Shown here: piece after piece, positions 24,603-30,624 of the stretch | How positions within the stretch are numbered: the first letter of the stretch is position 1 | How the letters are laid out: each line of letters starts with the position of its first letter | Assembly (NCBI GenBank): GCA_038496445.1 | Contig: JALMLS010000537.1 | Location: forward strand, 1 to 64,000 | From: Trichosphaerium sp. ATCC 40318 | Lineage: Eukaryota > Protista > Tubulinea | Length of the DNA: 64,000 nucleotides | Direction of reading: 5' to 3' | The notes under the pieces: model-generated | Seen by the model: the letters and a program-made list of their open reading frames with translations, nothing else | The model's database searches: none | Told to the model about the DNA's origin: nothing | Position numbers and translations under genes: made by a program

Positions 24603-27600
24603 TTACATGTATACTATCACTACAGGAGCTTGTTCTTTTGGTTTGTTGAAGAACTGCATGCTAAAATCTTCTGTTTGTTGTGGAGTTCCATAGTATCGAT
24701 AAACACGAACGAATACTGCTACAGGCTCACGCAGTGGTTGAGTATGGAATAGTTTGAGTTGTACATCATAAGGCCCTGTAGGCGCGTTTCTGATCGTATA
24801 TTCTTGAGGACCATAACCTGTACAAAGGTTACACAACAACGATCTATTAAGTTTTTTTTCTTGTACCTTGCCGATCGTCTGACATAAGTCCGCCTGATCG
24901 TGTGTGGTTGTTAAAACTATAACATCTTTCACCTGAAGGCTCAATAACATGTAACTCTACATTGGCTAATGGATTATTCCACGTGATAACAACTCTTAAG
25001 TAACAATAAGTTAGTTTGATGTTTAATGTTTAAGAGTGTTCTTTTTATGAACATACCTCAAGTCGTATTGAAATGTTCTATTGCATATCGTATATAAAGA
25101 AGAGCTTATAGATTTCAGAAGATTTTCAGCCCTTATAATGCCCTCATGGTCATTACATGATGTCCTGAGTGAATGCATAATTCTGCACAAATCCTTTAAC
25201 GCAAATATCTCAATGTTGCCCTTAAAACGATCATCCCAGGTTGTTGTTAGCACTTTCCCAAGTAATTCTATACTCTCTAATATATCCTTGTCTTCGAAAG
25301 CAAGTGCAGCCTCCCTATAACATAGTAAGAAACCAAAAAAGAATATGGGAAAATAAGAAAAATATAGGAAAAAAAAAACCCTATAACGCTTCACGTACCA
25401 CAAGAGCTGAGGTTGCTCTCCACGAATTTTGATCATCTTTTTTAGTACTTGGCGTATCAAATCTTTAGATGCCGTTGCGTCTATGGTATACAGATACCAA
25501 ACAAAAAGACGATAATACTCAATGTTATCAATATCGTCTTCAATCTTTTTTGATATTAATAGTTTACCCAAACGTTTGTTGTTCTGTCCATAGTAAAATG
25601 CGTGATTGATGATTCTTTCTAAAGACACACCGTCTGCTTCAAACTCACTAATGTGGCATGGACTGTCTAATTTTCTTGTACGTTGAGATGATACTATGCC
25701 TTTCTTCTGCCTAAATTTAATAGAGTAAGAACTCGTTCAAATGCGACCTTGTTATCTTTGTTTTACCTTGAACCAACGCTAACTTGTCTCATCAATTCAT
25801 CTAATATAGAATAATCACATTCCTTGTCTTTTGATACATCATAATCCATGCTGTCCTCATCACTACTTGAAGAAGAAGAACTGCTTTCAGATAATAATTC
25901 GGAATCATCTGATTCATCTTCAGAGCTAGAATGCAGAACATATGATGTGTCTTTATCGTCATCTTCACGCTAAATAACATTAATAAAAGTGTTTACAACG
26001 TTTTAAACAAAAATTATACATAAGCACTCCTCCGTGAACGTCTAATTTCTCGAAGTGCAACAGAACCTGCAGTTGATAAGGAACTCCAATAATACAAAAG
26101 AATTTAATATGTACCAGGTCTAAATCTATGTGGTTTCCGTATTCCAGACTCCGATGTTGTAGTATTCGCGTCATCGCTTAAGATAATTTCACGTTCTGAC
26201 TGAGTGTTTTGTGGCTTGTATGCAGGTGCCTTAGATGTAGTCCATCCAGAAGTTTCTCTTCTAGATGATGGAATTGTCTTCACAGGTCCTTTGATTCCTT
26301 TACCCGCTCTGGGCGTCCACTGTAAATCTTCTTCATCACTTTCGCTTTCACTTTCATCACTTGAATCACTCAATATACGGCGGTGTCTCTTAGCAGGCTG
26401 TTTACCACCCAAACCTTTACCGCCTAAACCTTTTCCGCCTAATCCCTTACCGCCTAAACCTTTACCACCCAAACCTTTACCGCCTAATCCTTTACCGCCT
26501 AATCCTTTACCACCTAATCCTTTTCCTTTTTTTTCTTAGAACATTTTATAGTGTATCCAAATAAAGGTACCTCCAAGGCCACTGAAAGATCCATATTGGC
26601 CGATTTGTTTTTTTCTAGCTTTAGCAGGTTGAATTTCCTCTTCTTTCTGCTCTACAATCACTTTTAATCTGTCTAATGAGTCCAAATTTTTATCCCTTGC
26701 TCGTCGTTTTGCTTTTTTCCCTTTTACATTTTTAAGACGCTCTCTAGCTTCTGTTAACATTTCAGCCTCTTCATCGTCATCATCCATTGCATCCTAAAAA
26801 ATAATTAGAAAAAAACAGCTAGCTGATGAAGCTGTGAGAGTAGGGTCACAAGAAAGTATACTTTGAGGTACAGCTAAGATTTTGGATTTTTAATACCTCA
26901 GACTGTTGCATGTGGTCATTTACCGAGCTTGCTTGGTTTTTGGCGTTCTGAAAAAAAGCTCCTTTGTGGTAGTACTTCTGCAAAAACTTGACGCTACTTT
27001 TTTCTGATAGTTTTCTGACTTGTGCTCTTTCTTCTTGCAAACTTTGGTTCGTTAGGGCTGCTCTCTAAGCGTATTATGATAAGCTTGTTGAATAATAACA
27101 TAGTATTCATAGTAAGTACTTACTGTCATACTCCCTTCTGGATTTTTTACAACTACACAAAGAGCTCAGAATGAATGCACATGAATTTAAAAAAAAAACT
27201 TAAGAGTTTGATTTTTGTTTCTTGTAAGACTGTTTTTAGTCTGACCTCTGGTGGTATATAGTATTCATCGCAAAATGTATTGTTCTTGTTGCTTTGCAAA
27301 TTCAACGTACTTTTAAGTTTCCTTGTATTCTTATGTTGCTCTAGCTCATTGGAATCATCACTAACGCTTGGTGATGAGATTATAGAATCACTATCGTAAC
27401 CGCCCATCACACAAACATCCATAAAGTCGTCATCCGGCAACTCAAGCTTTGATGCTTCCTCTACTAGCTTTTCCATTTTTTCCAGATCATCAGGCATTAT
27501 ACTTATCTCTGGAGGCATTAGTGTACAGTCTGTTATGTCAATATCAATTGGTTCTTTCATATCTGATGAGAGTATTGGTGCAGGCTCATTCACAACACAT

Positions 27601-30600: not shown

Positions 30601-30624
30601 TATGAGTGCTATTGACGCATCCAT
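24603..30624 (-). CDS. VIT - vWA - [histone/spliceosome mosaic insert] - TPR-like - DUF2135 protein (multi-exon)
   Basis: VIT: VQIDIHDALAETKLEIIFEN…EAEFEFPL…AFVSKYAIEINNVMVEAVVVDKEKARKVFEQE. vWA with MIDAS: VLWDVSGS, GATN, LVTDG. ITI-like C-terminus: WAKMKIDEL…GKRYSLVTPYTSMIVLE. TPR-like: RGEQPQLL…WDDRFKGNIEIFAL. DUF2135: LRVVITWNNPLANVELHVIEPSGERCY…GYGPQEYTIRNAPTGPYDV. Confidence 0.85.
26365..26526 (-). repeat. 15-bp coding tandem repeat (GGKGL)x7, histone H4 tail-like, ending GGKQPAKRHRRILSD
   Basis: GKGL(GGKGL)7GGKQPAKRHRRILSD versus H4 [21 protein letters not shown]. The repeat units differ only at synonymous positions. Confidence 0.9.
27603..27863 (-). other. Histone H2B-fold module embedded in the VIT gene
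   Basis: [37 protein letters not shown]…[23 protein letters not shown] is about 55% identical to canonical H2B by hand alignment to the remembered sequence. It is in frame with the upstream VIT-gene exon (…KNRQ|VLQFAD). Confidence 0.9.

Follow-up and report, generated by a model that had tools for sequence, protein, structure and literature searches.

A gene of bacterial VIT-vWA-TPR-DUF2135 type in Trichosphaerium sp. with a linker predicted to carry histone-like and splicing-factor-like cassettes

How could a protein architecture of bacterial type come to hold pieces of histones and splicing factors in its middle, and what might they do there? This question is raised by a predicted gene on the minus strand (30624-24603) of a contig from the protist Trichosphaerium sp. 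ATCC 40318 (JALMLS010000537.1, positions 1 to 64,000, the 64,000 nucleotides (nt) being referred to below as the window). A previous reading based on the letters only, hereafter the sequence-only reading, had described a VIT-vWA-TPR-DUF2135 protein whose linker contained six diverged snippets of conserved nuclear proteins, seen as a selected panel of baits. Five of the six modules and the single spliced frame were recovered in the present analysis, while the remaining segment, assigned to Prp22/DHX8, was not. The components are of known kinds and their combination is new. As the sequence-only reading had presumed, no protein like this one was found in the databases or papers searched; in particular, no paper was found that treats DUF2135 and VIT together or that connects histones in amoebae with integrated decoys.

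The window has an even composition of approximately 36% GC and few long open reading frames (ORFs), and its exons are parted by short GT-AG introns, i.e., a eukaryotic organization. For model building, stop-free pieces were listed and chained automatically into exons, and the junctions were then curated by eye and against bacterial homologs. In the curated model, the minus strand from 30624 to 24603 can be joined into one continuous, stop-free frame of 1,542 codons running from VIT to DUF2135. The 19 exons lie at 30624-30528, 30483-30403, 30264-30007, 29948-29699, 29627-29375, 29232-28893 and 28774-28527 (exons 1-7), at 28481-28354, 28305-28167, 28106-27246, 27064-26897, 26793-26571 and 26534-26115 (exons 8-13), and at 26066-26020, 25969-25767, 25710-25399, 25314-25057, 24994-24867 and 24817-24603 (exons 14-19). 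They are separated by 18 introns, all GT-AG and 36-181 nt in length. The ordinary in-frame GT-AG junctions of the sequence-only reading were hence borne out, except that the one junction it had left out of frame, near 27200, is removed because 27246 spliced directly to 27064 stays in frame.

The two ends of the predicted protein follow a bacterial plan. The VIT domain and the beta-rich region behind it occupy exons 1-4 (29699-30624), the domain itself being recognized in exon 3 (Pfam 4.5e-11, 43.3 bits for a cut-off of 26.5) and by tblastn of bacterial homologs (30262-30056). A divergent vWA-like domain, collinear with these homologs, covers exons 5-6 (28893-29627) and bears MIDAS-type residues, read by eye (D-V-S-G-S, the T in IGATNL and the D in LVTDG); the bacterial member L003 likewise has DxSxS, T and D at the MIDAS positions. 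It is followed by an ITI-like region in exons 7-9 (28167-28774; tblastn 28775-28335, E down to 1.2e-15). Beyond the linker, bacterial homology resumes around residue 1277 with a degenerate TPR-like region (exons 16-17, 25057-25710) and continues into a DUF2135/YfaP_C domain that carries the stop codon (exons 18-19, 24603-24994). The latter is supported by Pfam (2.4e-5 in the last exon, 24.8 bits for a cut-off of 22), by tblastn and by clear conservation in a protist relative, P0121 (62% identity in alignment A2).

The bacterial set consisted of eight loci from metagenome-assembled genomes (MAGs) of Myxococcota and Bacteroidota (e.g., L003-L010), fetched via P0123, a relative from a metagenome contig that had been found with the TPR-like piece. 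Their proteins of ~950 residues carry VIT and DUF2135 and align collinearly to the window by tblastn. Against the spliced model, blastp returned two blocks, one over residues 20-599 (E 3e-47 with L003) and one over residues ~1277-1519/1527 (E 1e-21 to 7e-25), so that the backbone type named by the sequence-only reading is indeed that of bacterial VIT/DUF2135 proteins. Searched against solved structures, a profile of seven bacterial members matched human ITIH4 (residues 38-594, E 1.1e-13), ITIH1 (E 0.0027) and the VIT region of PARP4 (E 1.2e-6), and its positions 673-773 matched TPR proteins. The kinship with ITIH4 that had been suggested is therefore one of VIT plus vWA. Judged from the predicted protein, the window gene is an intron-rich eukaryotic gene descended from a bacterial VIT-vWA-TPR-DUF2135 family, itself homologous to the heavy chains of the ITIH proteins.

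Domain order, the collinear blocks (20-599 and 1277-1519) and a disordered acidic linker in the same place are shared by the two. Differences are found at the N-terminus, in the introns and in the linker length. The N-termini of L003, L004, L008 and L010 are signal-peptide-like or lipobox-like by eye, and the bacterial genes have no introns, whereas the window protein starts right at the VIT domain, without signal peptide, and its gene has 18 introns. Together with their acidic low-complexity linkers, the N-termini of L003, L008 and L010 suggest exported proteins. The product of the window gene is instead most likely intracellular, since it lacks a signal peptide, starts directly at VIT and begins 49 nt from a divergent neighbouring ORF. 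As a side observation, the gene start (minus) and that F-box/LRR ORF start (plus) are head to head (30624-30674), leaving a very short shared upstream region.

A further difference lies between the two blocks. Bacterial homology breaks off precisely where exon 9 ends (residue 599) and restarts inside exon 16, and the gap between them, 120-226 residues in bacterial members, reaches 677 residues in the window protein (exons 10-15). The four bacterial members read at this position (L003, L005, L008 and L010) hold an acidic low-complexity spacer and no nuclear-protein content, in agreement with the sequence-only reading. The reading frame points to how the enlargement could have arisen. Exon 10, exon 11 and exons 12-14 taken together each form a frame-neutral 0-0 unit, exon 13 on its own being of phase 1-1, and a direct splice from exon 9 to exon 15 stays in frame and would leave a linker of ~105 acidic residues, much like the bacterial one. 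On the gene model, the enlargement to 677 residues is due to three frame-neutral cassettes, one with H2B, one with MFAP1 and one with CDC5L, H4 and H3. This arrangement, although of small statistical weight, is compatible with cassettes having entered an old phase-0 intron, and it would allow isoforms with different sets of modules.

The first cassette is exon 10 (27246-28106, phase 0-0), which encodes an acidic and aromatic head, a KRKR stretch, an H2B fold and an acidic tail with a net charge of -18 and one predicted helix. The fold, placed by the sequence-only reading at 27603-27863, extends over ~27597-27866 and is complete (alpha1-alpha2-alpha3-alphaC), with a Pfam Histone match of 1.4e-9. 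A search of 5.8 billion proteins with exon 10 gave 1,230 matches at E<=0.001; the 120 matches listed all contained H2B, covered the fold only (24-43% of the query) at 43-64% identity, and none of these 120 shared the flanks. In an AlphaFold model, four helices were predicted with 10-residue block means of the local confidence score (pLDDT) of 70-95, the remainder being disordered, and Foldseek superposed the modelled fold on nucleosomal H2B with a TM score of ~0.8 and a root-mean-square deviation of ~2.1 Å. The protein search, Pfam, AlphaFold and Foldseek thus agree on a full H2B fold. Conservation is uneven within it. A stretch of 15 residues, which carries the contribution of H2B to the nucleosome acidic patch, matches the consensus at all 15 positions, while about two thirds of the 30 H2B positions with a conservation of at least 90% in the alignment are changed in the module (counted by eye). 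The changes affect loop L1 and alpha-2 and include HPDTGIS to HPGSEIS and a Ser at the K120 position. Compared with cellular H2B, which it resembles by its complete fold and its identity, the module thus differs by altered near-invariant positions and by being embedded in mid-protein; sitting in a 287-codon exon of a 1,542-residue protein, it is not a small stand-alone canonical H2B. MacroH2A, a histone-fold fusion variant, is a comparison case for this module.

The second cassette, exon 11 (26897-27064, phase 0-0), encodes an MFAP1 segment at 26906-27040. It was recognized by Pfam (2.9e-10) and, in the Protein Data Bank (PDB), by chain 5o9z_K, where it corresponds to residues 328-354 of human MFAP1 (E 0.003). 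It includes a 12-residue motif, and the architecture is partial, with profile positions 135-178 of 215 present. This agrees with the MFAP1-like motif that had been noticed at 26948-26989. The third cassette opens with exon 12 (26571-26793, phase 0-1), in which an acidic head accompanies a CDC5L/Cef1 segment (26608-26793) equivalent to human residues 140-201. In the PDB, phmmer matches of 1.1e-7 to 1.9e-7 were accompanied by S. pombe cdc5 and yeast CEF1, the values for CDC5L, cdc5 and CEF1 together ranging from 1.1e-7 to 4.7e-5, which gives substance to the Cdc5L-like segment first seen at 26665-26787. Only residues 140-201 are represented, and the Myb repeats of CDC5L are not in the window gene.

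The Prp22/DHX8-like segment (27013-27152) had to be rejected. Its downstream half lies inside the Pfam MFAP1 match and its upstream junction is out of frame, no in-frame GT-AG joining being available. A search of the piece it would require, the candidate micro-exon VVKNPEGSMT (27123-27152, minus), gave no PDB match at E<=10 in a library in which Prp22/DHX8 spliceosome chains are presumed to be included. These 30 nt are most likely intronic.

The remaining modules are histone tails. Exon 13 (26115-26534, phase 1-1) encodes eight GKGLG units, the basic patch AKRHRRIL, an acidic Ser-rich spacer and a diverged H3 N-terminal tail that ends with KPHRFRPG. In the H4 part (26362-26526), the units reproduce the context of H4 K8 and arise from a 15-nt repeat (26401-26526), and AKRHRRIL corresponds to H4 residues 15-22. 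Against the PDB, all of the 60 matches listed for exon 13 were H4 or H3 chains, with marginal E of ~0.01. The amplified H4 tail proposed at 26365-26526 is borne out by these data. Exon 14 (26020-26066, phase 1-0) adds SVALREIRR, from the alpha-N part of H3, and the intron between exons 13 and 14 interrupts RPG|S within the Gly codon. Once spliced, the H3 part (26280-26115 and 26066-26026) aligned to H3 residues 2-57 with a score of 106 for a mean of 29.1+/-5.1 over 2,000 shuffles, a longer piece than the K36/alpha-N region of 26025-26145 described previously. Exon 15 (25767-25969) closes the linker with an acidic Ser-rich spacer of net charge -16 that resembles the native bacterial linker. Along the whole insert, net charge alternates between the basic modules (+4 to +15) and the acidic spacers (-7 to -18), which puts numbers on the acidic or Ser-rich linkers that had been pointed out. 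The H2B flanks, the spacers and exon 15 were also searched for hidden further modules, and nothing meaningful was obtained (Pfam E<=10; PDB). As a side observation, the lysines H3 K4, K9, K27 and K36, H4 K20 and H2B K120 are replaced in the mimics, and H3 K14 (with A-P behind it), H3 K18, H4 K16 and the eight K8-type units are kept. Since the alignment of the H3 tail is weak, this pattern is only a lead.

Several features indicate that the insert is coding and under constraint. Its frame contains no stop in 641 codons, while the two alternative frames have stops at rates of 0.06 and 0.12 per codon. GC content decreases from the first to the third codon position (GC1>GC2>GC3), codon-position GC is as in the backbone, and relative synonymous codon usage correlates with that of the backbone (r=0.83). 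The eight GKGLG units are identical as protein and differ in nucleotides at 5 sites, all third-position and synonymous; with 27% of single changes being synonymous, the chance of five such events is ~1e-3. Neutral drift would not be expected to leave 15 residues of H2B intact while changing so many others. By these sequence measures, the insert appears to be coding and constrained and shows signs of purifying selection, so that the selected panel of the sequence-only reading stands as far as constraint is concerned and is reduced from six modules to five.

Other origins of the insert were considered and set aside. Capture by a Helitron or a Pack-MULE was rejected, no terminal inverted or direct repeats being present at the insert, where the only repeat is the 15-nt coding one. 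An assembly chimera was rejected as well, composition showing no break across the region. No paralog of the gene was found within the window.

What function could such a linker serve? The vWA block of ITIH4 is followed by a variable region (residues 633-713) that acts as a protease-susceptible bait; once a protease has cut it, the enzyme is captured in a complex that requires the MIDAS site. The insert is located in a topologically equivalent position, after the vWA and helical block, and for this reason a reading of the linker as a bait made of mimics was preferred. According to this proposal, the linker would act like the protease-susceptible bait of ITIH4 and would present its mimics of invariant nuclear proteins to enzymes by which such proteins are cleaved, modified or bound, whether these enzymes are the host's own or come from intracellular bacteria or viruses. 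Once it is cut or engaged, the MIDAS face of the vWA domain and the C-terminal TPR/DUF2135 part might retain the enzyme or signal its presence. The choice of baits on display could also be changed by alternative splicing, as each cassette leaves the frame intact. A bacterial-derived gene with a nuclear-mimic linker and a bait function is, overall, the best explanation, which we adopt tentatively and at somewhat less than an even chance. Its functional step alone, namely that the linker displays nuclear-protein mimics as bait to the enzymes acting on them, is more doubtful still. The most specific version is unlikely as a whole, i.e., an intracellular ITIH4-like trap with a splice-selectable panel of mimics (H2B, H4 tail, H3 tail, CDC5L and MFAP1) that would catch enzymes of intracellular bacteria or giant viruses; in this same unlikely version, the trap would amount to an immune sensor of the integrated-decoy kind, built on a chassis that is not an NLR and that was acquired from bacteria.

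Known systems share some of these traits. ITIH4 and the window protein have in common VIT, vWA with MIDAS residues and a long variable segment after the vWA block. However, ITIH4 is secreted into the plasma of vertebrates, its bait is proline-rich and it has neither TPR nor DUF2135, whereas the window protein is of intracellular type, holds nuclear mimics and ends with TPR and DUF2135; secretion and the ITIH C-terminal region are both absent from it. An additional link to protease traps is found in the namesake of DUF2135. In E. coli K-12 (L012, NC_000913.3 2327367-2336644), the alpha-2-macroglobulin gene yfaS is followed, two genes further downstream, by yfaP within the same-strand cluster yfaA-T-S-Q-P, yfaS being an alpha-2-macroglobulin pseudogene with a bait-region domain. 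YfaP thus resembles the window protein by its C-terminal DUF2135/YfaP_C domain and by a cluster shared with a bait-region trap, but it has 258 residues, no VIT and no vWA, and its link to a protease trap is one of gene neighbourhood only. The MG domains and the A2M bait-region domain that are present in YfaS were not found in the window gene by Pfam.

Plant NLR proteins with integrated decoys carry copies of host proteins or domains in a sensor chassis. One folded domain is typical there, whereas several unrelated short mimics stand in one linker in the window gene. No NB-ARC or NACHT domain was detected in any exon piece scanned against Pfam, and there is no LRR chassis. VWA5A/BCSC-1, PARP4 and Dictyostelium Vwa1 are likewise VIT-vWA proteins of the cytoplasm or nucleus without signal peptide. 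To our knowledge, none of them has a TPR-DUF2135 end or histone and spliceosome modules.

Several observations weigh against the bait reading or against the gene model on which it is built. The joining of exons 1-19 is predicted from genomic sequence and homology. The intron at 26535-26570, of only 36 nt, is a weak point of this model, and so are two backbone introns with GTTC donors (GTTCAT at 30006 and GTTCCG at 28892), which were kept because homology to bacterial proteins permits no other in-frame GT-AG choice. The divergence of the vWA domain exceeds what Pfam can recognize, a weak VWA_CoxE match (0.084) being all that was obtained, and its MIDAS residues were read by eye. Besides, a folded histone domain would be an odd protease bait, unlike the disordered baits of ITIH4 or alpha-2-macroglobulin. 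Database searches add to these points. An exhaustive search of 1.84 billion representative proteins with the TPR-like piece returned 3 weak hits, none of which is the window protein, and hence the protein itself is absent from the collection of 15 billion proteins. Two of the hits are the relatives P0121 and P0123; the third, P0122 (repetitive, 799 residues, E 6e-4), shows no motif of the family and was taken as a chance match. P0121, the only eukaryotic relative found, is an ORF of 314 residues in an MMETSP transcriptome of a marine protist; it is labelled complete yet covers the C-terminal module alone. Its start is equivalent to the last third of exon 15, where a short N-terminal match lacks significance, its score being attained in 369 of 2,000 shuffles. 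Either that organism may produce the C-terminal module by itself, or the transcript assembly may be truncated. Used as a query, P0121 gained one further bacterial-type DUF2135 protein. No ortholog bearing the insert was found in the protein collections, in JGI metagenome contigs or in viral contigs; among the viral contigs, neither the C-terminal domain nor exon 13 had a match, and nothing was obtained from the JGI metagenome contigs.

With these reservations, the bait reading was compared with three other explanations. A docking role is nearly as good as the bait reading, although it is unlikely when taken by itself. The modules would then be working interaction parts that place VIT-vWA and TPR-DUF2135 on chromatin or on the co-transcriptional splicing machinery, the H2B fold pairing with H2A, the basic patches serving as import signals or as binders of the acidic patch or DNA, and the MFAP1 and CDC5L segments binding spliceosome partners. 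Indeed, the H2B fold is complete, with hydrophobic core and acidic-patch stretch intact, the signal peptide is absent, and the patches KRKR, KKAKRRAR and AKRHRR resemble import signals as generally understood. Moreover, the intracellular VIT-vWA proteins VWA5A, PARP4 and Dictyostelium Vwa1 are thought to work by protein-protein contacts. However, so many near-invariant H2B positions are altered (loop L1, alpha-2, K120) that normal incorporation into nucleosomes is questionable, H3 and H4 contribute tails that lack a fold, and CDC5L and MFAP1 are represented by only ~60 residues each. No reason is apparent for five unrelated docking pieces on one scaffold.

A less probable explanation is that the insert is a spacer filler. 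All that the family would require is then a long, disordered and charged linker, and fragments of abundant nuclear genes would have been exonised by exon shuffling into a phase-0 intron, frame and charge being of importance and identity not. The bacterial linkers, which are acidic low-complexity spacers of varying length, would be in line with this, as would the frame-neutral cassettes, the possible joining of exon 9 to exon 15, and the extent to which the H3 tail part, the flanks of H2B and a large share of its surface have drifted. A filler would nevertheless hardly retain the most conserved motifs of each parent (44 residues of motif sequence in addition to the CDC5L helix) or GKGLG units that are identical as protein yet synonymously different, and five independent captures, all from conserved nuclear proteins, would be an unlikely random draw. 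The least probable explanation, to which only a slim chance is given, is that several genes or an artefact have been joined, i.e., a VIT-vWA gene, an intronless gene for an H2B variant (ATG near 28058) and a TPR-DUF2135 gene beginning at an internal ATG of exon 15. The genome is compact, with divergent start codons 49 nt apart, in-frame ATGs occur in exons 10, 12 and 15, and P0121, labelled complete, begins at the equivalent of exon 15. Against such a division, both halves belong to one protein in the bacterial homologs, exon 11 has no usable start codon, and exons 12, 13 and 14 share matching non-zero phases. The gaps of 36-181 nt are bounded by GT-AG and have T-rich tracts, like the introns validated by homology, while composition is uniform and neither flanking terminal repeats nor transposon marks were seen. 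Finally, a precursor of histone-derived antimicrobial peptides, with cationic peptides and acidic propieces, was rejected as the principal explanation in view of the missing signal peptide and the ITIH-like chassis.

Provided that the modelled joining of the exons is correct, the locus would be a clear natural case of exon shuffling, in which pieces of five unrelated, near-invariant nuclear proteins came to lie in a single linker of a bacterially derived gene. Were the linker to act as a bait as well, the decoy principle of NLR proteins and the bait principle of ITIH4 and alpha-2-macroglobulin would both reach an intracellular protist protein, and the modules would point to host targets of pathogens, namely histone tails, the acidic-patch region of H2B, CDC5L and MFAP1. 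Even under another function, the gene would offer a testable case of which parts of histones stay constrained outside the nucleosome.

The surroundings of the gene contain other features. Two F-box and LRR genes, at 83-1080 (minus) and at 30674-31642 (plus), the latter being the divergent neighbour mentioned above, share a recurring GVHTI.L repeat that suggests an expanded family; their best database relative is an MMETSP transcript with 50% identity. An identical copy of the neighbour's product is not on record. For two genes, MMETSP transcripts are the nearest matches, and one contig is from JGI sample 3300016894. A single-exon ORF at 7819-8598 (minus) combines an F-box-like head with MORN_2 repeats (Pfam 9.1e-28). 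Exons with RWD, an RGG-rich stretch and OB_NTP_bind at 13130-17556 (minus) look like a DHX57-like DEAH helicase gene. An intronless tRNA-Leu(CAA) is located at 41032-41114 (plus), and an exon of 5-formyltetrahydrofolate cyclo-ligase at 53853-54341 (minus).

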